Origin: Octopus sinensis | Taxonomy: Eukaryota | Length of the DNA: 64,000 nucleotides | Direction: 5' to 3' | NCBI RefSeq assembly: GCF_006345805.1 | Contig: NC_043017.1 | Location: 6,944,001-7,008,000, forward strand | In this document: positions 25,371 to 62,900 of the stretch, in pieces | Layout of the letters: each line of letters opens with the position of its first letter | Position numbering within the stretch: the stretch's first letter is position 1 | Translations under genes and position numbers: made by a program | The notes under the pieces: generated by a model | The model's input: the letters and a program-made list of their open reading frames with translations, nothing else | The model's database searches: none | What the model was told of the DNA's origin: nothing

Positions 25371-27099
25371 AACCTGTCGTGTCACTGGTGTTATAGCTGA
25401 CTATGCTGAAAAGTGAGTTCAGGGCCATGCAACAGTTTTTGCTTTGAAGAGAATAAAGTTCGATATTCAAGAGACGAGGAATTATGTGCATTAAGAGTAC
25501 ACATGTCTGTGGAGTACTCTGCCACATGCATGTTAATTTCACAAGCAGGCTGTTCCGTTGATTGGATCAACTGGAACCCTCATCATCATAATTGGTAGAG
25601 TGCCAGTCAATATCAACACAAATATGAAAACATGCAGTGTGGCCAAACTGATAAGGAAGTTCGCTTCACAACTCCAAGATCCTGGTTTCAGTTCCACTGC
25701 ATGGCATCTTGAACTAATATTATTTTGTCAAATCCATGCCAGCATGGAAGGCTAACATTAAATGATTATGATGATGACGATGATATCTTTTATCTTTTAA
25801 TTGTTTCAGTCAGTGGACTGTGGCCATGCTGGGGCACCACCTTGAAGAATTTTTAGTCAAAGGAATCGACCCCAGTTATTTTTTCTTTTTAAGCCTGGTA
25901 CTTATTCTATTGGTCTCTTTTGCTGAACCGCTAAGTTAAAGGGACATAAACACACCGACATTGGTTGTCAAGTGGTGTGGTGATGGACAGACACAAAGAC
26001 ACACACATATATACATGACGGGCTTCTTTCAGTTTCCATCTACCAAATACACTCACAAGGCTTTGGACTGGCCCAAGGCTACAACAGAAGACACTTGTTC
26101 AAGGTGCTATGTAGTGGGCCTGAACCTGGAATCATATGGTTAGGAAGCAAGTTTCTTACCACACAGCCACGCCTCTGCCTACCATTTGTTTAATTTTTTT
26201 TTTAATGTCTTTTAATGTTTTTTCCCTTCTATGATGAGTTAAATGAATATGTATTTTATTGAGATAATTGTTTTGTGGCTGACTGGCCTTCTTGTAACTA
26301 ACCCCTCAATTGTTTTTCGTGCAAGGGTCCTCTTATGCCACACGTCTTTGAAAACAACAGATCCAGTTGGAGGATTTGTTAACAGGCAAATGACTAGAAA
26401 TTAACACCTTGTGGCTCCACAGATTTTTCTGTTTCTTTATGCAAAGCGTGCAAAATGTAAGCATTTAAATATACCACACACACACACACACACACACACA
26501 CATGCATGCACACATGCACACACGCACACATATGCACATGCGCACACATACATTCACGTATGCACACGTACATTCATGTATGCACACACAACACACACAC
26601 ATTCACACACACACACTCACACATACAGACACACTCACACACAAACACACACTCTCACACACACACACACACTCACATACATGCACACACATTCTCACAC
26701 ACACTCTACACACAAACTCACACATTCACACACACACACACAATCAACACACACACTCACTCACACACATTCATGCATGCACACAACCAACACACACACT
26801 CACACACATCCACTCACGCACACACACACATCCACGCATGCACACACTCACACACAAACACACACACACGCATGTATGTATATTTTTTTATCATTTACTA
26901 GTTTTAATCATTGGACTGTGGTCCCATCCTTCGGCTCAACTTTGAAGGGTTTAGCTGAACAAATTGACCCTTGCATTTCTTTTTTTTTTTGTTAAGCCTA
27001 CTTCTTATTTATTTTATTAAATAACTGCTAAGTTACAGGGACCTAATCCAACCCCAGTTGTCAAGTAGTGGAGAAGAGACAAGCACACACACACACACT

Positions 27100-38710: not shown

Positions 38711-38871
38711 TTTACCATCATCGTTGTCGTTCTAATGACCACTTTTCCATGCTTGCATCGGTTATATAAAGTTTATCGAGGCATGGTCGCAGTCCAATGA
38801 GTGAGATAAGTAAAAAAAGAATAAAGATATGCATGTGTGTGTTTGTGCTTGCGGCTGCTTTAACCACTATA

Positions 38872-39640
38872 TTTTGTGTCACCGACACCGGAGCCTTTTT
38901 GTGTCACCAGCATGGGTACCTTTTTTGTATCACCAGCATAGGTGTCATTTTCGTGTCACCAACATAGGTACCTTTTTGTGTCACCAGCACACGTGCCTTT
39001 TTCATGTCACCAACACGGGTACCTTTTTTGTGTCACCAGCATGGGTACCTTTTTTGTATCACCAGCATAGGTGTCATTTTCGTGTCACCAACATAGGTAC
39101 CTTTTTGTGTCACCAGCACACGTGCCTTTTTCATGTCACCAACACGGGTACCTTTTTTGTGTCACCAGCATGGGTACCTTTTTTGTATTACCAGCACAGG
39201 TGCCTTTTTCATGTCACCAACACAGGTGCCTTTTTGTGTCACCAGCATGGGTACCTTTTTTGTGTCACCAGCAAAGGTGCCTTTTTCATGTCACCAACAT
39301 GGGTACCTTTTTCTATCACCAGCACAGGTGCCTTTTTCATGTCATCAACACAGGTGCCTTTTTTGTGTCACCAGCATCGGTACCTTTTTTTGTGTCACCA
39401 GCACAGGTGCTTTTTTCATGTCACCAACACGGGTACCTTTTTTGTATCACCAGCACAGGTGCCTTTTTCATGTCACCAACACAGGTGCCTTTTTTGTGTC
39501 ACCAGCATGGGTACCTTTTTTCTGTCACCAGCACAGGTGCCTTTTTCATGACACCAACACGGGTACCTTTTTTGTATTACCAGCACAGGTGCCTTTTTCA
39601 TGTCATCAACACAGGTACTTTTTTTGTGTCACTGGTATAG
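38872..39640. repeat. Minisatellite, 25-26 bp unit, about 30 copies, with higher-order structure
   Basis: Unit (G/A)TGTCACCA(G/A)CA(C/T)(A/G)GGT(G/A)CCTTTTT(T/C). Confidence 0.9.
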
Positions 39641-40345
39641 GTATTTAAACAATTTTTTTTAAATATACAATCTCTACTAATATTTAATTATAAAAATACA
39701 ATAAGATTTTTTTAATATATACATTAAATGCCCCTGGAGGTCCAGTAGAGTAAAATAGGAAAGAAAGGGGTCCTATAGGCAAAACAGGGTTTGCGTACCA
39801 CTGGTTTATAAGAATATATCACAGAACCATTTATATTAACTAGTTTCCTTTATAGCCGTGGGGGGGATGACACCACCCCACCTTCTCCAATTTAGAAGTC
39901 TATCAGATGGTTGTAAAACAGAGTGGGGGAGCAAGGGTGGATGGAGGGATGTTGCCTGTTAAAGCCTCCACACACCCCTTTTGCTGCCTTAATCCAGTGA
40001 GTCACTTGGAGGTGGGTGGTGAGCAGGACATTTATTACATGGCTCCTGTCATACAGGCGTGGGGGGGAGTGGGGGGTGGCATGGAGGAAATATTATCCTC
40101 TGTTTACATGAAACATGGTTGTTAAAGCAGCCACACACACACACACTTGACTGCGGCCATGCTGGAGCACCGCCTTTTTAGTCGAGCAAATCGACCCCCA
40201 GGACTTATTCTTTGGAAGCCTAGTACTTATTCCATCGGTTCTCTTTTGCTGAACCGTTAAGTTACGGAGACGTAAACACACCACCATCGGTTGTCAAGTG
40301 ATGTTGAGGGGACAAATACAGACACACAAACATATATACACACAT

Positions 40346-44997: not shown

Positions 44998-45003
44998 TTT
45001 ATT
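44998..45003 (-). terminator. Candidate polyadenylation signal AATAAA of the BEN gene
   Basis: AATAAA on the minus strand, 38 nt after the stop codon. Confidence 0.45.
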
Positions 45004-45040: not shown

Positions 45041-45192
45041 TCATGAGCTTATGTTTGCAGCAATTTGGTCAATCTTGAACTCGTTCCGTAAGTTCCTGCG
45101 TGCATTTGTGATTTTATTCCCCACTGTTACCCGAAACGTCCGTGAATCCATCATCTTAATATTCTTTCTGTCAGAAAACTCTGCCAGGAACT
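45041..45192 (-). CDS. BEN gene terminal coding exon: C-terminal BEN helices, stop TGA at 45041-45043
   Basis: Acceptor ttttcttttctttacAG|; phase 1; encodes EFLAEF...FRVTVGNKITNARR. Absent from the ORF track because it is short. Confidence 0.88.
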
Positions 45193-48100
45193 CTGTAAAG
45201 AAAAGAAAATTCTTTTTTTAAATCTGTAATTTATGTTAGTTGGTAAAACATTTAAAATATACTTTGGGAGTGGCTGTGTGGTAAGTAGCTTGTTTACCAA
45301 CCACATGGTTCCGGGTTGAGTCCCACTGAGTGGCACCTTGGGCAAGTGTCTTCTGCTATAGCCCCGGGCCGACCAATGCCTTGTGAGTGGATTTGGTAGA
45401 CAGAAACTGAAAGAAGCCTGTCGTATATATGTATATATATATATATGTATGTGTGTGTATGTGTTTGTCCCCCTAATATTGCTTGACAACAGATGCTGGT
45501 GTGTTTATGTCCCCGTCACCTAGCGGTTCGGCAAAAAGAGACCAATAGAATAAGTACTGGGCCTACAAAGAATAAGTCCCGGGGTCGATTTGCTCGACTA
45601 AAGGCAGTGCTCCAGCATGGCTGCAGTCAAATGACTGAAACAAGTAAAAGAGTAGGCACAGATGTGGCTGTGTGGTAAGAAGTTTGCTTCCTAACCACAT
45701 GGTTCTGGGTTCAGTCCCACTCTGTGACATCTTTTGTCCTGACATTGTCTAGTGTCACCACAGTGTGGGAGTGTGACTGAATGATGTTTAGCATCCACTT
45801 TTCCATGCTTGCATGTATCGATCAGACAAGAATTTGTTGAAGCAGGAATCAGAGTAGAAGTCCCTTGCCTAAAGTGCTACACGGTGGGACTGAACCTGAG
45901 ACCACATGGTTGGGAAGCAAGCTTCTGAACCACACAGCCATGTCTGTGCCTATCAACCACATCAATGTCAGAATTTGGTGATGATGATGATCATTATCAC
46001 CATGCAGGCCATCACTCACATCAATCTCATTTGTCTTGTTGATCAAAATATTAAACCAGGTGATGTCTTTGTTTCAAAAGAAAAATTATTTATAAAAGCA
46101 GATTTATAATGATTACCTTTTATGGCAGTTAATTTCTTCCTATCAAGTGGTGTGTGTTGTTTGTCTTTCTGTGTCCGTAGCCCTAGGCCACTAGCTGCCA
46201 CCAGCTCATCGCGTGTGAACATAGCATCAACCAACTGCAACAGTAGAAAAAAAAAAAGGGTTTACTAAAGCAACACACTGATATTTTACACCGTTTTACA
46301 CAGGTGCCTCCAATTTATCCCTCTGATGCCCACCACATACATTTCACCGGGCAAGCCTACAAAATCAGAAAACAGCACAGCTCCCTTGACTTTCAGAAAC
46401 ATCTTTTCACACTTAGTGTTGCTGAAGCATGGAACAAATTACCTGCATCAGTTGTTAGTTGCTAAGACATTGCATCCTTTAAAACCTCCATGCTTCTTGA
46501 AATTTGCCAACACTACACCTGACATCCGACCTCCATATGCATGCACACATGTATATCATGATTCATACACTGTTCACTTTCCTGAAAATTATCAACCATC
46601 TTACAAACAATAACTCTGAGCACCTTTTCAAACTCCACCTGTCTAACATCCGTGGACATATTTACAAAGTCAGAAAACAGCACAGCTCCCATGACTTTAG
46701 GAAACATTTTTTCACGCTGAGAATTGCTGAAGCATGGAATAAACTGCCGGCATCAGAAATTTGTACATTACATGCACCTTTGATGAGTTGAAGTGCACCT
46801 GAGCACTAAACACAATAATTTTATTATTATTATTATTATTAAATCCACTCACAAGATTTTGGTCTGCTCAGTGCTGACGCTTGTCTAAAGTGCCAAATGG
46901 TTAAATAATAATAATAATAATAATGAAATTATTGTATACAGTGCTCAGGTGCACCACAACTTGTCAAAAGTGCATATAAAGCATATGCATTAATGTACAA
47001 ATGTCTGAAAAGTGAACAGTGTATGAGTCAGATACATGCTTGCGTGTGTATGGAGCCGAGAAAATCAGGTGTAGTGTTGGCGAATCTCAGGAAGCATGGA
47101 AGTTTTGAAGAATGCAGTGCTCCGACAACTAACAACTGATGCCGGCAGTTTATTCCATGCTTCAGCAATTCTCAGCGTGAAAAAATGTTTCCTAAAGTCA
47201 TGGGAGCTGTGCTGTTTTCTGACTTTGTAAATATGTCCACGGATGTTAGACAGGTGGAGTTTGAAAAGGTGCTCAGAGTTATTGTTTGTAAGATGGTTGA
47301 TAATTTTATGGGTGTCTGTCAAGTCAGCTGCCAGACGTCGGAGTTTCAATGTATCCATGCCCTGGGAAGTAAGGCGTTCAGAATATGGCAAATGCCTAAT
47401 GGAGGGTATTCTCTTGAAGCCAAACCTCTTAGCCACTCATCCATGCCTGCATTTATATTCAAAGTTATTATTATTATTATTCTAGTATATCACCATATTT
47501 CTGCTGAAATACACAGCTTTTGTTCCAAATTTATTAACAATTTATTTATTAACATAGGCGCAGGAGTGGCTGTGTGGTAAGTAGCTTGTTTACCAACCAC
47601 ATGGTTCCGGGTTCAGTCCCACTGCGTGGCACCTTGGGCAAGTGTCTTCTACTATAGCCTCGGGCCGACCAAAGCCTTGTGAGTGGATTTGGTAGACGGA
47701 AACTGAAAGAAGCTCGTCGTATATATGTGTATATATATATATGCGTGTGTGTGTTTGTGTTTGTCCCCCTAGCATTGCTTGACAACCGATGCTGGTGTGT
47801 TTATGTCCCTGTTACTTAGCGGTTCAGCAAAAGAGACCGATAGAATAAGTACTGGGCTTACAAAAGAATAAGTCCTGGGTCGAGTTGCTCGATTAAAGGC
47901 GGTGCTCCAGCTTGGCCTCAGTCAAATGACTGAAACAAGTAAAAGAGTAAAGATTCCATTAAAATAACTTTAAGCCGGTGTTTGGCGCATAATTTTCTCG
48001 CTGTCATTTTATCAGTGTCCGTGGTTTTTATCTGCTGTTATCTATGGCAGACGTTCAAGGAACACCGTCTTCCACCCACATCAACCTTTCCTTCTTCAGA

Positions 48101-51100
48101 ACCAAACCATTAAAAAAACAAAAAAAAAACAAACAGAATAATTGTAGACGTAACAAACTGACTGACCTTGTTTAAAAGATATTTCATTTTATCTCCGAGT
48201 CGTTCATTTGTTGCTCGTAGAATTGCTTTTAACTTCATGTAATTTATTGGAAGGGACTTTGTCATGGCTGTTCCCTAGATATAAGAATACAAGGAATACC
48301 ATAAGCATCATCATCATCGTCGTCATCATTATTTAATGCCTTCTTTTCCGTGATTGCATCGATCAAATAAACTTCCCACCATACCCCATCTAGGAATACA
48401 TTATCCAATGCGCCCCCACCACCACCACTTTTGCTTTTCGATAGTAGATGATTTTAAAGAAATTTAGCTACTATTTTTAGCAAGTCAAGTGACCACATAA
48501 TGCCGATTCTTCTCATTTTGTTCATCCGAAAAGAAATTGTTTCAAGGGAGATAACTTTGATAAACACTGAACCGATTGACAAATTTACTGATTTTTCAAG
48601 GGAATTTCTTTTTCTTTCCTATCATGCGTTAAAATCTTTTAAATAAACATCATGCCTCATAAGGAATTTTTTAAAACTGATATTTTAAAAGCGTAAATGT
48701 GCAAAGTTATTATTCAGTGAAAATTTTCTGTATAATATAAACTTGAGAAGAAATCGATTATAAAAAAGAAAAAAACTTAAAAACATACAATTACATCCTT
48801 TTTACTTTCAACAAGAAAAAAAGAGAATAAGTAACAATAATAAAACTAGATATATGCTATATATATACATATGTATATACACACACACACGTACATACAT
48901 ACACAGTAATCTCTCGACTATCGCGGGTGTTACGTTAAAAAAAAAAAAAACGCGAAAGATAAAAATCCGGAAAAACAGAACTGTACTGTATAAATTTTTT
49001 TTTATTAATTTTATAATTTGTATATATTCATCTCTCTCTATATAAAGCTGGAGTTGTCTGTGTACGGCAGGTTTGGTAGCCTTCAACTAACACTATCTCC
49101 TCCGAGACCCTGCGGTGCAAGTTGACCAAAACTGAGAGTATGATAGAAGAAGGCTTGCTCTTCCTTCCGTAGAAGAAAACATTCAAATCGGACCATGTTA
49201 ACACCAAAAATTATTTACATGAAAAAGGTGCTTTTTCCCTATTTTTTACGATTTTTTTGACTGCTGTGTCACCATTTTTCGGTGTATTTCAACCAGAAAA
49301 ATGTTCACTTAAAGAGAATAACAAGCTACATAATGCAAAAATTTTACTTTTCAAAAAATTCCAATTCTAAAGGATCGAAACAAACCCGAGCAACGCCGGG
49401 CGATACTGATAGTTTAATTATAAATGCAAAACAACACCACGAAGGAATGGACGTAAGCTTAAAAAAATAAAGTGGGAGATTATCGGTAAAGGTTACCTCC
49501 CTTGAAGTAGGTTCTAATCGAGAAATCCAAGCTTTGATCAGCGCTCTGTCTCTTTGTTAGTTGCTGGCATTGCACGCCGAGCGTTGGATTAAGCATTTTA
49601 TTTAAGCCGGATCGCAAGAACCCATATGGAGGTTGTATTTAATCCTTGATGAATGGTTTAATGGTTAGCAGAGGAGGAAAATAACAGCAAATATGACAAC
49701 ATCAGTCCGATATACTCTTTACTCTTTTACTTGTTTCAGTCATTTGACTGCGGCCATGCTGGAGCACCGCCTTTAGTCGAGCAAATCAACCCCGGGACTT
49801 ATTCTTTGTAAGCCCAGTACTTATTCTATCGGTCTCTTTTTGCCGAACCGCTAAGTGACGGGGACGTAAACACACCAGCATCGGTTGTCAAGCAATGCTA
49901 GGGGGACAAACACAGACACACACATATATATAAATACATATATACGACAGGCTTCTTTCAGTTTCCGTCTACCAAATTCACTCACAAGGCATTGGTCGGC
50001 CGAAGATGCCACGCAGTGGGACTGAACCCGGAACCATGTGGATGGTAAGCAAGCTACTTACCACACAGCCACTCCTACCATGATAATTAATTAAAATGTG
50101 GTGGGATAAGAGGACTTTTATGTAATGAATACACACACATACGTACGTCGGTACGCGTGTGTGTGTTTATATATGTATATAAATATGGAAGCCGTTTAGG
50201 GGTCAATAAGTCTGGCTAAAATACACTTGTATACCTATTTCTTTATTACCCACAAGGGGCTAAACACAGAGGGGACAAACAAGGACAGACATAGGTATTA
50301 AGTCGATTATATCGACCCCAGTGCGTAACTGGTACTTAATTTATCGACCCCAAAAGGATGAAAGGCAAAGTCCTTGGCGGAATTTGAACTCAGAACATAA
50401 AGACAGAAGAAATACCACTAAGCATTTCGCCCGGCGTGCTAACGTTTCTGCACGCTCGCCGCCTTTATACACTCGTATACCTGTCAGTAGAGTGGGTATG
50501 TTCTTTTCTACTCTAGGCACAAGGCCCGAAATTGGGGGGGGGGGTCAGCCGATTAGATCGACCCCAGTACACAACTGGTACTTAATTTATCGATCCCAAA
50601 AGGATGAAAGGCAAAGTCGACCTCAGTGATTTCTTTTGTGCTGTAGACCTTTTACCATTTCTGTAGTGCTCCTTGCCTTGATGTCCTCAGCACATATTTA
50701 TTTGGCTTAACTTTTTAGTATTCAGATTACTCTGTCTAAAATAATGCTTATTTATTCACACTGTTTTGAATTGATCATACATTATCTTGTAGCTTCAAGG
50801 TTTTGATGATGTGATTGATAATTTTTAGAATGACATTGAAGAGTAGGTGCAAGAAGCCAGATCTAGCCAGTCTGCACATAAAACAGGTAGAATATGTGGG
50901 TTGGATATGGCTGGTTCAAATGCTAAACGGTTCGTGTTTCATTCAGCCCTGGGGCACAAGTGGTCAGCACGTGATAAACACACCGTAGTCATAAAAAGAC
51001 CCAACAAACAAACAACAAATATAATAGGCGCAGGAGTGGCTGTGTGGTAAGTAGCTTGCTAACCAACCACATGGTTCCAGGTTCAGTCCCACTGCATGGC

Positions 51101-52062
51101 AACTTGGGCGAGTGTCTTCTACTATAGCCTCGGGTCGACCAAAGCCTTGTGAGTGGATCTGGTAGACGGAAACTGAAAGAAGCTCGTCGTATGTATATAT
51201 ATATATATATATGCTTGTGTGTCTGTGTTTGTCCCCCTACCATTGTTTGACAACCGATGCTGGTGTGTTTATGTCCCCGTTACTTAGCGGTTTGGCAAAA
51301 GACACCGATAGAATAAGTACTGGGCTTACAAAGAATAAGTCCCGGGGTCGAGTTGCTCGATTAAAGGCGGTGCTCCAGCATGGCCGCAGTCAAATGACTG
51401 AAACAAGTAAAAGAGTAAAGAGAGAGTAATGTAGAGGGTGAGGGTGGATTTGGAAAGTGATTAAAAAAAAAATGGTGATGAGGTACCAAAACTTACCTCG
51501 ACTAACAGTGGCTGGAGATTCATGGCTGGATTTGAAGGAGAAAGAGGTAGAGGAAGAGTAGGTGGAGGGGACGGAGCAGCAACTGGAGGGGGTGCCGCTG
51601 GCAGGGACGGTACATATCTGCTAGTTGTATCTTCAACAACAATTTCAGAGTTCTCTCGTTGGCTTTTGATGGCTATTAAAACACTTTCCAGCCAATTGCT
51701 GACCACTGTTCGTTCTTGGTCTGAATTTGGCATCAACAACTCTACAAAAAATATAGGAAAAAATAATGACAATAATAATAAGTCCATGGCTATGTGGTTA
51801 AGAAACTTACTTTGCAACCACATGGTTTCAGGTTCAGTCCCACTGCACAGCATCTTGAGCAAGCATCTTCTATTATAATCTTGGGCCAACTAATGCCCTA
51901 TGAGCGAATTTGATAGAGGTGTGGAAGCCTAATGGAAAACCTCTATAATTGGCTGATGAGTACTCAGCATTTTAAAACTGTTGTATTACTTACAACATTT
52001 AATAAAATGATGTAGTACGAAACGATCGTACCAAATTACCAGAGTCATTCTTGTTGCTTATT

Positions 52063-52099
<37 letters not shown>

Positions 52100-52423
52100 T
52101 AGGAAGGGCATCCAACTGTAGAAACTCTGCCAGATCAGATTGGAGCCTGGTGCAGCCATCTGGTTCGCCAGTCCTCAGTCAAATCGTCTAACCCATGCCA
52201 GCATGGAAAGCGAATGTTAAACGATGATGATGACGATATATATATTATATATATAGCTGGGTGGCGTCATTCGAAGGCTAAAACAATGCAAACGCATTGT
52301 GACCAGCGATGTGTAACAACATCTGATGGTCTGGTCGGTCACGTGATCACGTGATATATATATATATATATATTGGATAATAAAACCAATGGTTTACACC
52401 TCCTATATTCCATCTTCCATCTG

Positions 52424-52457
<34 letters not shown>

Positions 52458-55400
52458 TTGAACTGTGTATGTGTGTGGTTATGTTTGTGTTGCATTTTGG
52501 TATGAAAGTGAAAGTAATGGGATGATAATTAATTTTAACTAATATAATATATTTATATATATATATATATATTTTTTTTTTTTAAAGAAAAATATATATA
52601 TAATGAGTTAAAAGAAACATATAAATAACAAACGAGAAACAGACATAACTCATCAGTTATTGGGTCAGTGGATCAAATGCAATTTCACCCATATGTCTAA
52701 ACACTCACACAGCCCACCCAGCTGTAAAATCGAGTGAAAAGGGACATAATCACGCTTTTTAAATCAAATGTTTGACAGAAGGGAGATAATCTCACATCAC
52801 TAAACACTGGACTCGACTGTGCTGAAAGCATGGGAAAAAAACACCCGGTTCATTCTGTAAAGTAGTCAGCATTAGAAAGGGCATCCGGCTGCAGAAACAT
52901 TGGGGGCCAGTGCAGCCCTCTGGCTAATCGGGTCCTGTTGAACCATCCAATCCATCCTAGCTTGGGATGCAGATGTTTGATGATATATATGTGAGTGTAA
53001 GCATGTGTATATATACGTATATATAGTCACTTATATAGTTAACCAGGTGACACACAAAGGAGTCGTACCCACCGACTGGTGTAGCAGCACCATAGTCAAC
53101 TGCTACAAAGGTAAAGGTGACACCTTAGATAGAAATAATTACAGAACTAGAGAAGTTTCAGGTGTGGAAGCAAGGTCTAGAATTGAAGTTAACCTAGCAA
53201 AAGCCAAAGTCGTAGTAAGTAGGAAGGCGGACAAATCACAAATCCCTTCAGGTAGATGGTCCTGCTCAATCAGCAGAAAAGGTGTAGGTAGACACTCCAG
53301 AAGATCTACACAGTGTAAGCTATGGACACATAAGAGGCGCAGCAATATCAGAGGAAGGTTAATAGGAAAGATAGTTTTTGTGTGTGGAAGGTGCACAGGT
53401 ACAATAAACACAAAAAACGTGCAGAAAATAGATTCCATAATGTGCCAGGAGGGAAAAAATAGAAGTAGTCGAGAGCTTCCGTTACCTAGGTGACCACATC
53501 AGTAGCAGGGGTGGATGCTCTGAGAGCATAGCTGCTAGAATAAGAATAGGCTGGGCAAAGTCCAGAGAGCTCCTACCTCTGTTGGTAGTAAAGGGCCTCT
53601 CACTCAGAGTGAAAGGCAGACTGTATGATGCCTGTGTGTGAACAGCCATGCTACACAACAGTGGAAACATGTTGCTGTGACTGCTGGGGACGTGTGAGCC
53701 TGTAAGAAATGAAGCTTACTTGTTCTGCTGGATGTGTAAGGTCAGAGAAACGTTGGACATGAGAAGCATCAGATGTGGTGCGCAAGAGGGACGACTGCGT
53801 TGATATGGTCATGTGATGAGTATGGATGAGGACAGCTGTGTGAAGAAGTGTCACATTTTAATGGTGGAGGGGACCTGTGGAAGAGGTAGACCCAGGAAGA
53901 CATGAGATGAGGTGGTAAAGCACGAACTTCGAATGTCGGGCCTCACAGAAGTAATGACAAGCAACCAAGATCTTTGGAGATATGCTGTGCTTGAGAAGAC
54001 CCATCAAGCCAAGTAAGATCATAGTCGTGGCTGATGCCAATGTTGTTTAACTGGGCCATTAAAAGCACCCTTCAATCGTTGGGTGATATACTGTGCTTGT
54101 GAAGGCCTATCAAACCAAGTGAAATCATAACCGTGATGGATGCCAGTGCTGTCTGACAGGCATCCATACTGGTGGCACATGAAAAGCACCATTTCTGCAT
54201 TGGGCCTCATGGAAGCAGTGACCTCAAGCCAAGTAAGAATGTAGTCATGGCCAATGCCAATGTCATTTAACTGACCCATTAAAAACACTCTTCAATCGTT
54301 GGGCGATATGCTGTGCTTGTGAAGACCTGTTGAACCGAGTGAAATCATAGTTGTGGCACGTGAGAAGCACCATTCGAGTGTTGGACATCACGAAGGTAGT
54401 GACAGGTGACCAAGACCCTTGGCGATACACCCTGCTTGTGTTGACCTGTCAAGCCAAGAGAGACTATAGTTGTGGCCAATGCCATTGTCAGATCAACGGC
54501 ACCCATGCTGGTTCCATGTAAAAAGCACCCACTATACTTTCGAAATGGTTGGTGTAGGAAGGGCATCCAGCTGTAGAAACCTTGCCAAATCAGACTGGAG
54601 CCTGGTGCATCCCCCCCCCCGCCGCTTCCCCTAGCTTACCAGTTTTCAGTCAAACCATCCAACCCATGCCAGCATGGAAAGCAGACGAACAATGATGACG
54701 ATGATGATGATGATATTATCCGTGTGGTAAGCTTTCTACAGCCGGATGCCCTTCCTGCTGCCAACCCCCCACCTCTTCCCAAGTGAGGTAGTTTCTTCCC
54801 TCCTCCCTCTTTGGAGGCACAAGCACTTCCACACACATGTACACACACAACAGAAACTTCCGCCAACCAAATTGAATCACAAGGCTTCAGTCAGCCTAAA
54901 GCTACAGAGGAAGACACTTGCCCAAAGTGCCATGCAGTAATATGAGTATAAAGATGCACAGATAGACAGACAGACAGACAGAAAATAAGCAGGTGCGAGG
55001 GGTTGCTGAAATGGCCCTGGCTTTAAGGGTATCACAAAAGGCCTGGTTGGAGGCCCAACCTCCCAAGTTCTTTTACAGGGCTTAGAAAAACTGAAGGACT
55101 GCTGTGATAAGTATGTGAATCTGAGAGGGGAATATGTCATCATCATCATCATTGTTTAGCGTCCGCTTTCCATGCTAGCATGGGTTGGACGGTTCAACTG
55201 GGGTCTGGGGAGCCAGAAGGCTGCACCAGGCCCAGTCTGATCTGGCAGTGTTTCTACAGCTGGATGGCCTTCCTAACGCCAACCACTCCGTGAGTGTAGT
55301 GGGTGCTTTTTACGTGCCAGACGAGGCTGGCAGGCGGCCACGATCAGATGGTGCTTTTTACGTGTGTTGAATAAAATCATAATTAATTGAACACCCTGTA

Positions 55401-55737
55401 TTTAACTTTTTACCCAAAGCCAAGAACTTTTCAGCACCCTCTCATAAACAGCTAGAAAATAGGCATGGATGTGTAATATTGAGACAGAAATCTAGAGAGG
55501 GGGAGTAAAACCTTAGCAGTTTTTTTTGAAAAACAACAACGTGACCTGAGCTTATAAAAGAGCCTGCTTACCACACCAGTCGCAACATTTGCCTTGCAGC
55601 TGTTGGAGCTGTTCAAGAGCTTTCTTCAACGTATCATTCTCTTCTTCTAAGTATTTTATTTTCTTCTTTAAATTCTCTTTATTATCATCATCATCATCGT
55701 CTTCTGTTTTTATGTACATAACTTGAGGTTCTGACAT
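45041..55737 (-). CDS. BEN-domain (BEN-solo) protein, 226 aa, 4 coding exons: join(55572-55737, 51497-51741, 46117-46234, 45041-45192)
   Basis: Exons of 166+245+118+152 = 681 nt. Introns are GT-AG with compatible phases 1, 0, 1. The spliced protein reads MSEPQVMYIKTEDDDDDDNKENLKKKIKYLEEENDTLKKALEQLQQLQGKCCDWC-E-LLMPNSDQERTVVSNWLESVLIAIKSQ...Pro-rich...NPAMNLQPLLVE-LVDAMFTRDELVAASGLGLRTQKDKQHTPLDRKKLTAIK-E-FLAEFSDRKNIKMMDSRTFRVTVGNKITNARRNLRNEFKIDQIAANISS*. The motifs LVDAMFTRDEL, PLDRKKLTAIKEF and GNKITNARR follow the BEN-domain pattern as I recall it. Orthology is not determined. Confidence 0.88.
46117..46234 (-). CDS. BEN gene exon: BEN domain core
   Basis: Acceptor ttttttttttctactgttgcAG|; donor AAAG|GTAATC; 118 nt, phase 0 to 1; encodes LVDAMFTRDELVAASGLG...PLDRKKLTAIK. 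Confidence 0.9.
46358..46840 (+). mobile_element. Old CR1-clade LINE 3' fragment containing a 172-bp templated insertion
   Basis: Diverged ...RKHFF...AEAWNKLP... region, 3'UTR and (TAT)n tail. Confidence 0.75.
46905..47410 (-). mobile_element. Younger CR1-clade LINE 3' fragment, tail-to-tail with the previous copy
   Basis: LPYSERL...TLKLRRLAADL...RGHIYKVRK...RKHFFTLRIAEAWNKLPASVV...FKTSM; (ATT)n tail. Confidence 0.85.
49030..49413 (+). mobile_element. Non-autonomous Helitron, same subfamily as 32193-32586
   Basis: Colinear with the 32-kb copy; terminal CTAG mutated to ATAG. Confidence 0.8.
51497..51741 (-). CDS. BEN gene exon: amphipathic helix, Pro-rich linker and start of the BEN domain
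   Basis: Acceptor ttcctatatttttgtAG|; donor GAG|GTAAGT; 245 nt, phase 1 to 0; open frame matches ORF 51461..51889. Confidence 0.88.
53040..54715 (+). mobile_element. RTE-like LINE, 5'-truncated and internally deleted, with PHD-like Cys motif, repeated 3'UTR and (GAT)n tail
   Basis: VPTDWCSSTIVNCYKGKGD...RNNYR; FRYLGD; GRGRPRKT*DEVVKH; the 3'UTR ends ...CATGGAAAGCAGACG-(ATG)n. Confidence 0.8.
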
Positions 55738-55741
55738 TTGC
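55572..55741 (-). CDS. BEN gene exon containing the start codon (ATG at 55737); acidic stretch plus coiled coil
   Basis: Acceptor tttttttttctgtgttatctctttgaacAG|gcaaATG; donor GTGTG|GTAAGC (phase 1); heptad pattern LKKKIKYLEEENDTLKKALEQLQ. Confidence 0.85.
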
Positions 55742-56239
55742 CTGTTCAAAGAGATAACACAGAAAAAAAATATTATTGTTGTTGTTGTTGCTGCTGTTAT
55801 TATTATTACTGTTGTTGTTGCTGTTGTTGTTAGTGGAGGCAGCGAGCTAGCAGAATTGTTAGTATGTTGGGCGAAATGCTTGGTGGTATTTCGTCTGTCG
55901 CTACGTGCTGAGTTCAAGTTCCGCCAAGGTCAACTTTGCCTTTCATCCTTTCAGGGTCAATAAATTAAGTACCTGAGAAACACTGGGGGGGTTAATGTAA
56001 TCAACTAGTCCCCTCCCCTAAAAAACTTCAGGTCATGTGCCTATAGTAGAAAGGATTTCTGCCATTACGTTCTGAGTTCAAATTCCGCCGAGGTCGACTT
56101 TGCCTTTCATCCTTTCGGGGTCGATAAATTAAGTACCAGTTACGCACTGGGGGTCAATGTAATCGACTTAATTCGTTTGTCTGTCCTTGTTTGTCCCCTT
56201 TATGTTTAGCCCCCTGTGGGTAATAAAGAAACAAAAACA

Positions 56240-56273
<34 letters not shown>

Positions 56274-56506
56274 GAAGCAGCGAGTTAGCTGAATTGTTAG
56301 CACGCCGGACAAAATGCTTAGCAGTATTTCGTCCTTCTCTATGTTCTGAGTTCAAATTCCGCCGAGGTCAACTTTGCCTTTCATCCTTTCGGGATCGATA
56401 AATCAAGTACCAGTTGAGTACTGGGGTCGATGTAATCCACTATCCCCTTCCCCTACATTTCAGACTTTGTACCTATAGTAAGAAAGAATTATTATTATTA
56501 TCATTA

Positions 56507-56537
<31 letters not shown>

Positions 56538-56545
56538 TATTATTA

Positions 56546-56585
<40 letters not shown>

Positions 56586-57475
56586 GGCAGTGTGCTGGTC
56601 GAATTGAAAGCATGCCAGGCTAAGTGCTTACCAGCATTTTGTCTGTCTTTACCTTCTGAGTTCAAATTCCACCAAGGTGGACTTTGCCTTTCCTCCTTTC
56701 ATGGTTGATAAAATAAATGCCAACTGAACACTAGGAGGAGGGGGGGTGTCAGTGTAATCAACTTAAACTCGCCCCCAAAATTGCCGACCTTGTGCCAAAA
56801 TTTAAACCTCAACTCTAGACTTTATGATTGGGGAAACAAGCTTCTTAGCCTCACAGCTATGCCTGTGGCTATAAAACAGGTCAATAACATAAACTACTAG
56901 TCACGTACTAACGATTGCTTACATCAACTGTACTCCTCATCAAATTTGCAACTTTCAGGTAAAGCTAAAAATCATTATTAATTACAAGGTGAAGGCGGCG
57001 AGCTGGCAGAATCGTTAGCGTGCTGGACAAAATGCTTAGAGGTATTTCACCTGTCGTTACATTCTGAGTTCAACTTTGCTTTTCATTCTTTCAAGGTCAA
57101 TAAAATAAGTACCAGTTGCATACTAGGGTCGATGTAATCGACTCATCCCCACCCACCTCCCCCAAGCTGCCCTTGCGGCAAAAATTTGAAATAATTATTA
57201 CTTATAAGGTGGCAGAATCGGTAGATCACATTTCAGGTTCAAATCCAACGAAGACCAATTTTCCATTTCATTCTTCTGAGGTTAATAAATACCGGTCATA
57301 TACCAGGGTTGAAAACATTTGTGGGCTCGTGACTATATTAGAAGAAGGTAAATCCCGCCAGAGTCAGCTTTGCCTTTCATCTTTTTAGGCATCATCATCA
57401 TCATTTAACATCAAGATAAACAATGCCAAATTTCAGGCCTCATGCATTTAGTAGAAAGGATTATTATTATTATTA

Positions 57476-58703: not shown

Positions 58704-59952
58704 CAGGGTGCGGTGAATAAATTGTCATGTAAATAACACTGACATCTCATTTTAACAGATATATTTACCAAAATTACATAAAAATATCTTGAACTATTAA
58801 AGAGTAAATTTATTCAATAAAATCGCCATTGGCTTCAACCATGGCCTCCAGACAACTTTGGAATCTCCTGCAACTCTTCTACATGATCTCCTTGTTACAG
58901 TTGGTGAATGCTGCCATAATCCTTGCCTTCAGTTCACCTTTGGTCTTACAAGTTTTGTTGGTCTCTCGCTCAACTGCCCCCCACACGTATTAATCAAGGG
59001 AGTTGCAGTCTGGAGAGTTAAGTGGCCAGGTCTTAGGGGTGATGTGGTCACAGAAATTATCTGACAGCCATGACTTGGTTCTCCTGCTTGTGTGGCATGG
59101 TGCAAAGTCCTGTTGCCAGACATAGGGTCTTCCAGTGGCCACCCTGTTGACCCAGGGCAATACCACCTCCTCCAGGCACTTGATGTAGGCCTCCGTGTTG
59201 AGTCTGAGGCTAAGTGGGAAGATGGATGGGGGCATAACATCGCCATCACTAGTGATCACTCCAAACACTATGATGTTGACTGGATGTTTGATTTTTATCA
59301 CTCTTGGTACATGTCTTGGGGACACAACAAGCCAACGGTTGTTCTGTATATTCATCTGATCCTGGCAGAGATTTTTCTTGTCTGAGAAAAACCAAAGCAT
59401 TTCAGTTGGAGGGGATGTTTGAGTTTGTTCAAAAACTTTGTAGCATGGTCTTTCCTGTTGCCCTTGATGGCTTGAGATAAAAATTGGCCCTTTCTCATCT
59501 TGCATGAGGAATACTGAATGTCTTCATGCACTACCTGCCTGATAAGAAACTCAGACACTCCCATATCCATGGCAATGGACCTGATTGACATGGAGGGATC
59601 GATGTCAATCATGGCCTGGATCTCACCAACCAATTCAGGAATTCTTTTCTTATCATAACAATCAGAATGCGTTTTTCAAGCTGCCGTATCTTCGTAATCA
59701 CCATTAGACTCATTCAACCCTTTCCAAATCCTCTGCGCTGTCCTCAGATTAACACCCAAACACCCTTAAATGTTCGTATTGGAGCTTCTGGCACAAATGC
59801 CAAGCAGTACAGCATGTAATTTCCAAATTTCTGGCAGAATGAATTGCATCAGGGTGCTGTGTTTCTCACAGACAGTGCCCAACTGACCCTACTATACTGT
59901 GTAGTCAACAAAATCAAAAACAAAATGGTGACAATTTACTTTTCACACCCTA
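58704..59952 (-). mobile_element. Tc1/mariner DD37D (maT-type) transposon, near full length, inactivated
   Basis: Motifs WFFSD, WQQDFAPCH and SPDCNSLD, with 37 residues between the second and third Asp. Imperfect TIRs (C/T)AGGGTG..G..TAAATTGTCA. Frameshifts and stops present. Confidence 0.88.
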
Positions 59953-62733: not shown

Positions 62734-62900
62734 CTTTGTATGAATGACTGTTTACTGAAGTGCAGCTAACTGGAATTGCTAGTAGTACTGTGTGTATTAT
62801 ATAAACTGCTTCTTCCGGTGGTAGCAAAAGCCCAAAGAACTGGTAGTGTTTTGCTTAGCTCGTCAACCCACCCGCGACCCTCAATATCAATTCTTTTGTC
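62734..62900 (-). other. Candidate non-coding 5' exon of the BEN gene (5' boundary unknown)
   Basis: Donor CAAAG|GTAGGT at 62734/62733. If spliced to 55741, an in-frame TAG lies upstream of the ATG, consistent with a 5'UTR. CpG-containing sequence lies around it. Confidence 0.35.

Follow-up and report, generated by a model that had tools for sequence, protein, structure and literature searches.

Positions 45041-55741 of a 64,000-nucleotide (nt) stretch of the Octopus sinensis genome (contig NC_043017.1; the whole stretch is referred to here as the window) raise the question of whether the minus strand of this interval carries a complete gene, and which kind of protein it encodes. A first-pass annotation had proposed a complete gene, hidden among repeats, in which four short exons join to encode a coiled coil and a single BEN domain. 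As a class, BEN factors are young and comprise sequence-specific regulators as well as insulator proteins. To our knowledge, no lophotrochozoan BEN factor has been studied, and the BEN subtype found in the octopus has no characterised member in any animal. The locus is a real spliced gene, with one or more upstream exons preceding five coding exons, and it is the orthologue of Octopus bimaculoides LOC106872038. On the whole it is best explained, with a good though incomplete degree of assurance, as encoding a nuclear BEN-solo protein of 262 amino acids (aa) with a proposed dimeric mode of DNA binding.

Gene Structure

The exons and signals of the gene, in the direction of transcription, are as follows.

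62734..62762, minus strand: upstream exon, probably 5′ untranslated region (UTR); donor GTAGGT after its 3′ end at 62734, 5′ limit uncertain
55572..55741, minus strand: coding exon 1; acceptor AG at 55743-55742, ATG at 55737-55735; residues 1-55 plus 1 nt
51497..51741, minus strand: coding exon 2; residues 56-137, with the second helix (63-85) and a proline-rich linker
48167..48274, minus strand: coding exon 3; 108 nt, phase 0, 36 aa (GTAMTKSLPINYMKLKAILRATNERLGDKMKYLLNK), residues 138-173
46117..46234, minus strand: coding exon 4; residues 174-212, running from BEN helices 2-3 through the GLGLR loop into helix 4
45041..45192, minus strand: coding exon 5; residues 213-262, with the end of helix 4 and the long helix 5 (NKITNARRNLRN); stop codon TGA at 45043-45041
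44998..45003, minus strand: candidate polyadenylation signal AATAAA, read from the sequence, 38 nt past the stop codon

The four segments proposed at first are well-formed exons. Each is preceded by a polypyrimidine tract and an AG, the first three are followed by GTAAG or GTAAT, the last ends at the TGA, and their join keeps one frame of 226 aa. Exon 1 holds an acidic tract (D13-D18), followed by a leucine zipper at residues 20-48 and by the CCDWC motif at 51-55 (55573-55587). Its boundaries are the same in O. bimaculoides (chromosome L006, 10001-10166), and its tblastn identity is 100%. The splice sites and the frame of the four-exon model therefore hold, but a fifth coding exon, 48167-48274, was omitted. 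It is flanked by ...TATCTAG upstream and GTCAGT downstream, and both sites are kept in O. bimaculoides (L006 13333-13440). The four-exon join had looked complete because the missed exon is 108 nt long, so that skipping it preserves the frame. The gene cannot be called complete without it, as its product forms BEN helix 1 and most of helix 2; the upstream exon at 62734 was lacking as well. Because exon 3 intervenes, the proposed junction 51497/46234 has to be replaced by two, 51497/48274 and 48167/46234. The five-exon join comprises 789 nt and 262 aa and is exactly residues 16-277 of an annotated Octopus vulgaris protein of 277 aa (P0001), so that the window matches O. vulgaris or a genome all but identical to it. 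The 36 additional residues, inserted between '...LLVE' and 'LVDAMF...', are present in all five orthologues found in the database (P0001-P0005).

With the exon ending at 62734, the gene reaches past the interval 45041-55741. The O. vulgaris annotation reads this exon as coding ('LHFSKQSFIQR', 'MAALHFSKQSFIQR'), which gives P0001 an N-terminal extension of 15 residues. O. bimaculoides has a nearly identical copy of this exon and its donor, along with roughly 200 nt of surrounding sequence; a 4-nt indel inside the exon breaks the frame of P0001 there. The RefSeq model of O. bimaculoides and the cephalopod transcripts begin at the MSEP/MSA methionine, the transcripts with in-frame stops upstream of it, and no 'MAA' start exon supporting the extension was found upstream of 62762 in the window. 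Judged from these comparisons, the upstream exon is probably 5′ UTR, the ATG at 55737 is probably the start codon and the extension of P0001 is probably an annotation artefact. At the other end of the gene, an identity of 95% with O. bimaculoides over the 150 nt 3′ of the stop codon suggests that the 3′ UTR is conserved.

Orthologues and Conservation

A search of a protein collection returned five matches.

P0001, Octopus vulgaris, 277 aa: 'hypothetical predicted protein', with the UniRef name 'BEN domain-containing protein'
P0002, O. bimaculoides LOC106872038, 261 aa: 98% identical to the five-exon product
P0003, Argonauta hians, 300 aa: full-length orthologue
P0004 and P0005, unnamed proteins of RNA-type assemblies: full-length orthologues

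The last two are uninterrupted open reading frames (ORFs), exon 3 included, on RNA-type contigs, 1.0-1.4 kb long, that stem from five sequencing runs and are spliced transcripts of cephalopods, probably decapodiform ones, judged by their divergence. The O. bimaculoides chromosome (L006) has all five exons, their order and AG/GT sites unchanged; these exons reproduce P0002. Single-exon gene calls on genomic contigs of other cephalopods fall on the same structure, P0007 corresponding to exon 4, P0008 and P0017 to exon 3 and P0009 to exon 2. P0007 and P0008 share the exon boundaries on both sides, the phase-0 start of exon 3 included for P0008. The ends of P0008 and P0017 coincide with that of exon 3 (...LLNK), and P0009 lacks the first three residues of exon 2, beginning at the counterpart of residue 59.

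A codon comparison of the two octopuses revealed 19 synonymous and 4 non-synonymous differences and one in-frame codon indel, the changes in exon 3 being synonymous only. The coding sequences are 96.7% identical, compared with about 72% for flanks of 150 nt. By this codon pattern, the gene is conserved under purifying selection. The gene has not escaped annotation: identical or near-identical models are annotated in O. vulgaris and O. bimaculoides, and the gene is already in public annotation as "uncharacterized". In a literature search, no relevant paper was found that joins BEN domains with octopus or mollusc or mentions LOC106872038.

Protein Architecture and Predicted Fold

The 262-aa protein displays, in this order, an acidic tract, a leucine zipper of four heptads, the CCDWC motif, a second helix, a proline-rich linker (14 prolines) and a basic BEN domain. 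In the zipper (residues 20-48), L23, L30, L37 and L44 occupy heptad position d and I27, N34 and L41 position a. The N-terminal part has an isoelectric point (pI) of 4.5 and the BEN part one of 10.2. The CCDWC motif and the amphipathic stretch VVSNWLESVLIAIK (residues 68-81, inside the second helix at 63-85) are present as proposed at first, and both show little or no variation among the five cephalopod proteins.

The combination of a coiled coil with a single BEN domain is likewise confirmed. With the gathering score of 23.2 bits as threshold, the Pfam BEN family (PF10523) is recognised in the 262-aa protein (25.5 bits), in P0004 (28.1) and in P0005 (28.3), and no other Pfam family reaches its cut-off in the 262-aa protein. 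The suggested check against this profile fails for the 226-aa join, which stays just below the threshold at 22.9 bits, but succeeds for the full protein. AlphaFold2 predicts for the full length a helix at 16-57, another at 63-85, disorder at 86-142 and a five-helix domain at 149-261, with a predicted local distance difference test (pLDDT) of 83-84 for residues 21-40. A separate model of residues 125-262, based on a family alignment of 24 sequences, also has five helices (pLDDT 83.8). When this BEN model was compared with the PDB by Foldseek, each of the best 12 matches was a BEN domain, with NACC1 at the top ahead of Bsg25A/Elba1, Insv, BEND6 and BANP; the probabilities were 0.98-1.0 and the target-normalised template modelling (TM) scores 0.54-0.68. 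A second Foldseek comparison showed the same pattern.

DNA-binding BEN domains of type I feature a long C-terminal helix 5 and a substantial loop between helices 3 and 4, both in contact with DNA (Zheng et al. 2022, PMC8887127). The full-length octopus model shows a long helix at 229-261 and a 16-residue helix 3-helix 4 loop at 189-204, and the BEN-domain model agrees; as modelled, the octopus domain has the build of type I, an assignment that is structural only. BEN-solo proteins are defined by having one BEN domain and lacking any further recognisable domain (PMC4281564), and by this definition the octopus protein is a BEN-solo protein. A hidden N-terminal domain is ruled out because the orthologous transcripts carry in-frame stops upstream of the start codon.

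Two other identities were considered and rejected. A NACC-like BTB-BEN gene with concealed upstream exons does not agree with the lack of any BTB match in Pfam at E<=1, with the upstream stops in the transcripts and with the 20 residues that precede the zipper. A bZIP protein would carry a basic region before its zipper, whereas the acidic D13-D18 stands there; the Pfam matches to bZIP_1 and bZIP_2 cover the zipper part only and stay below their cut-offs, and a match to TSC22 is likewise weak and confined to the zipper.

Relatives and Family Placement

When the cephalopod profile was run exhaustively, as a hidden Markov model (HMM), against 1.84 billion representative proteins, just 40 matched at E<=0.001, and only the cephalopod cluster did so over the full length. 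The matches from other animals start at about profile position 90-120 and thus comprise the BEN domain with a short preceding stretch. They include echinoderms (brittle star, sea urchin, sea cucumber, crinoid), two acorn worms as hemichordates, vertebrates (sturgeon, paddlefish, lungfish, axolotl, newt, platypus, opossum), and in addition oyster, hard clam, a deep-sea snail and a sea anemone. Nearly all are labelled 'uncharacterized'. Two bear the automatic and unconfirmed names 'BEND4' (oyster K1QNY3) and 'BEND4-like' (crinoid). No eutherian protein was seen among the 40 representatives, which may reflect a lineage loss.

The closest non-cephalopod relatives are animal BEN proteins with a 'GLGLR...PLD...NARR' pattern (Saccoglossus, Ptychodera, Amphiura and others; E 1e-23 to 1e-4). 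Many of them resemble the octopus protein in that a coiled coil precedes one C-terminal BEN domain, but they lack the cephalopod N-terminal module, i.e., the CCDWC motif and the second helix; among the proteins compared, CCDWC occurs in cephalopods only. A KRAB box is fused to this BEN subtype in two axolotl relatives (P0013 and P0014, Ambystoma mexicanum), and a second BEN domain is found in one brittle-star relative. The proteins of platypus (P0012), opossum (P0032), sturgeon (P0018) and lungfish (P0021) combine this BEN subtype with a conserved N-terminal region and a zipper. The idea of a cephalopod-restricted protein can therefore be kept for a part of it: by these sequence comparisons, only the N-terminal module appears to be restricted to cephalopods, while the BEN subtype is widespread in animals, with members in a sea anemone, echinoderms, hemichordates, bivalves, a gastropod and several non-eutherian vertebrates.

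A search of all PDB sequences, which covers solved chains and thus no BEND5, retrieved the BEN domain of NACC1 at 5e-5 with the single sequence, at 3e-6 with the cephalopod profile and at 1.5e-10 with the family profile. BEND3 followed at 0.45 with the family profile, and no chain of BEND6, Insv, Bsg25A/Elba1 or BANP was matched at E<=10 with either profile. A word-indexed search for named relatives (BEND4, BEND7, NACC) with the family alignment A2 scored 1053 candidates and yielded 4 uninformative matches. Among solved BEN domains, it is that of NACC1, and not those of BEND6, Insv or Elba, that the octopus domain most resembles in sequence, and orthology with Insv, BEND5 or BEND6 is not supported. 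The kinship proposed at first with Insensitive/Elba and BEND5/6 hence extends to the layout of the protein but not to the sequence of its BEN domain.

DNA-Contact Residues and Proposed Mechanism

In the structure of NACC1 bound to DNA, helix 5 lies in the major groove, where D462, T465 and R469 read bases, and R421 from the helix 3-helix 4 loop reads the minor groove; N466, R468, R472, R400, R401, S423 and R429 contact the backbone (PMC11472053). These residues were mapped onto the octopus protein through the HMMER octopus-NACC1 alignment and the published residue list (PMC11472053). T465, R469 and R421 correspond to T241, R245 and R193, all conserved, and D462 corresponds to N238, a change from Asp to Asn. 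Of the backbone contacts, N466, R468 and R472 are conserved as N242, R244 and R248. The helix-5 motif and the G-L-R loop are invariant in cephalopods. Across the family as a whole, residues at the positions matching 238 and 241 differ and the 'NARR' core is nearly fixed, a sequence pattern that fits specificity-determining positions.

Based on sequence and model, the protein is most likely a dimeric sequence-specific DNA-binding regulator. The four-heptad zipper at the N-terminus would probably form a parallel dimer, and the CCDWC motif with the second helix (63-85), directly after the zipper, may stabilise the dimer or bind a partner. A parallel zipper would gather six CCDWC cysteines at its end, so that a disulfide or metal lock is conceivable, which is pure conjecture. 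From there, the flexible proline-rich linker would tether two basic (pI ~10) type-I BEN domains, each probably placing helix 5 in the major groove and Arg193 in the minor groove, as in NACC1. T241, R245 and R193 are kept but N238 is changed, and the predicted short site is therefore related to, not identical with, the CATG core of NACC. The dimer would read paired or palindromic short sites. By analogy with other BEN factors, the likely output would be transcriptional repression or chromatin-boundary activity (PMC4281564).

Alternative Explanations

Several points weigh against this mechanism. The NACC1 backbone contacts R400, R401, S423 and R429 are replaced by N172, K173, Q195 and H200, whereby the affinity for DNA could be lower. 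The full-length AlphaFold2 model has a low overall confidence (pLDDT 63), and the Foldseek E-values are modest (best 2.7e-3) although the probabilities are about 1.0. The roles given to the CCDWC motif and the second helix are guesses, and the literature search found no experiment on this protein or its BEN subtype. Moreover, some BEN domains are protein-interaction modules ('type 0') and not DNA binders (PMC8887127). The octopus domain might accordingly be a protein-protein module of this type, or the protein a co-repressor tethered by a CSL/Su(H)-like factor, in either case without sequence-specific DNA binding. Such a reading could point to BD1 of BEND3, a BEN domain without specific DNA binding (PMC8887127), to the Notch co-repressors BEND6 and Insv, which contact CSL via their BEN domains (PMC4281564), and to the phosphate contacts of NACC1 that are not conserved in the octopus. 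It is nevertheless rather unlikely, since the T-N-A-R-R-x-x-R and G-L-R motifs match the base and backbone contacts of NACC1 and do not vary in cephalopods, the domain is strongly basic, and the model displays the long helix 5 and the long helix 3-helix 4 loop of a type-I BEN domain.

Doubts about the gene itself are weaker than this. The 226-aa product of four exons might be the true or main product, or a regulated isoform which skips the 108-nt exon, as the frame survives the skipping and the exon 3 donor GTCAGT is the least canonical of the gene. Exon 3 is, however, found in all five database orthologues, including five independent transcript contigs, and is kept with its splice sites in O. 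bimaculoides under synonymous changes only; without it, the BEN domain is deprived of helix 1 and the greater part of helix 2, and the score drops under the Pfam cut-off. We consider this product highly improbable as an alternative. Hardly any weight is given to a transposon-borne or recently domesticated BEN gene, or to a pseudogene decaying among repeats. BEN domains do occur on viruses and mobile elements, the amphibian relatives are fused to KRAB, and the introns are full of fragments of short and long interspersed nuclear elements (SINEs and LINEs). Against this stand a single copy in the window with its exon bases outside repeats, a locus collinear with O. bimaculoides in which introns, promoter-proximal exon and 3′ flank are conserved, a strong synonymous excess, and orthologues across octopods and other cephalopods. 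The five-exon gene for a dimeric, DNA-binding BEN-solo protein is thus retained as the preferred explanation.

Genomic Surroundings

The window is eukaryotic, AT-rich and rich in interspersed repeats. The description of the gene as lying among repeats applies to its introns, which are crowded with SINE and LINE fragments, but not to its exons: about 44% of 45041-55741 has another copy elsewhere in the window, and not one exon base falls into a repeat. The gene itself is present once in the window. Rfam and transfer RNA (tRNA) scans of the whole window reported nothing, and Pfam scans of four transposon-like ORFs in the window gave no match.

Further elements observed in and around the gene are listed below.

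51771-54512, intron 1: about 2.7 kb without counterpart at the collinear point of O. bimaculoides (L006 11277/11281)
53005-53493, plus strand, within the preceding segment: reverse-transcriptase-like ORF, no Pfam match
46585-46756 and 47136-47307, intron 3: perfect inverted repeat of 172 nt (100% complementary), spacer 379 nt
45267-45657, 47563-47953 and 51033-51421 (plus strand) and 49715-50001 (inverted): an element of about 390 nt, present four times (copies 74-97% alike)
55802-56737 and 50238-50624: second repeat family
58990-59505, minus strand: ORF of 171 aa inside the long first intron, no Pfam match at E<=0.01
38829-39648 and 26411-26995, both plus strand: long ORFs, products of tandem or low-complexity repeats

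From the comparison with O. bimaculoides, the segment 51771-54512 is probably a lineage-specific insertion. Both arms of the inverted repeat in intron 3 hold the same LINE-tail-like ORF (...RKHFFTLRIAEAWNKLPAS), and the structure might have arisen very recently by inverted duplication or insertion, or else be an assembly artefact. The start of the 390-nt element resembles a tRNA-derived SINE head; ARAGORN and Rfam gave no report at this element. The ORF at 58990-59505 resembles the C-terminal part of a Tc1/mariner-type transposase. The two long ORFs consist of repeat-derived sequence, with a repeated 'FVSPAWVPFLYHQHRC...' unit and an (AC)n-type 'HTHTHT' run, and are unlikely to be genes.

Comparison With Known BEN Proteins

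The practical yield of the analysis comprises a corrected five-exon model, a corrected start codon for O. vulgaris and a corrected family assignment, namely a NACC-like BEN domain in a BEN-solo layout. Moreover, the kept and changed DNA-reading residues offer a concrete and testable prediction of the binding site. So far there is no pointer to a new mechanism or to a neural role specific to cephalopods, and the wider importance is modest. As a tentative and rather speculative extension, the octopus gene could be the coleoid-cephalopod member of an old, animal-wide and unstudied zipper-plus-BEN clade, with a NACC-type BEN domain but no BTB, which would occur in molluscs, echinoderms, hemichordates, non-eutherian vertebrates and perhaps cnidarians and was not seen among eutherian, insect or nematode matches. 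Cephalopods would have added the CCDWC motif and the second helix, which could make dimerisation redox- or metal-dependent, and the clade would recognise a variant of the CATG-type site of NACC.

With respect to layout, the octopus protein resembles the BEN-solo factors Insensitive, Elba1/Bsg25A and Elba2 of Drosophila and BEND5 and BEND6 of mammals, which likewise carry a single C-terminal BEN domain. In BEND5 and BEND6, a coiled coil precedes it, as the first-pass annotation states. The solved BEN domains of Bsg25A, Insv and BEND6 superimpose on the octopus model with target-normalised TM scores of 0.54-0.68 and share 17-19% identity with it in the structural alignments. Neither recognition of CCAATTGG-type sites, as by Insv, nor binding to CSL can be assumed for the octopus protein. 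Of the solved BEN domains, that of NACC1 (8yzs, BEN-DNA complex; 7bv9, nuclear magnetic resonance structure) comes closest in sequence and, as the top Foldseek match, also in fold, although the two domains are only about 26% identical. Common to both are the loop G-x-G-[LI]-R, the motif PLD and the helix-5 motif T-N-A-R-R-x-x-R, and both count as type-I BEN domains, the octopus one by its modelled structure. Unlike the BTB-BEN proteins NACC1 and NACC2, the octopus protein has no BTB/POZ domain, and the leucine zipper would supply dimerisation in its place. The gene is thus a new, unstudied member of the BEN proteins whose nearest characterised relative is NACC1.

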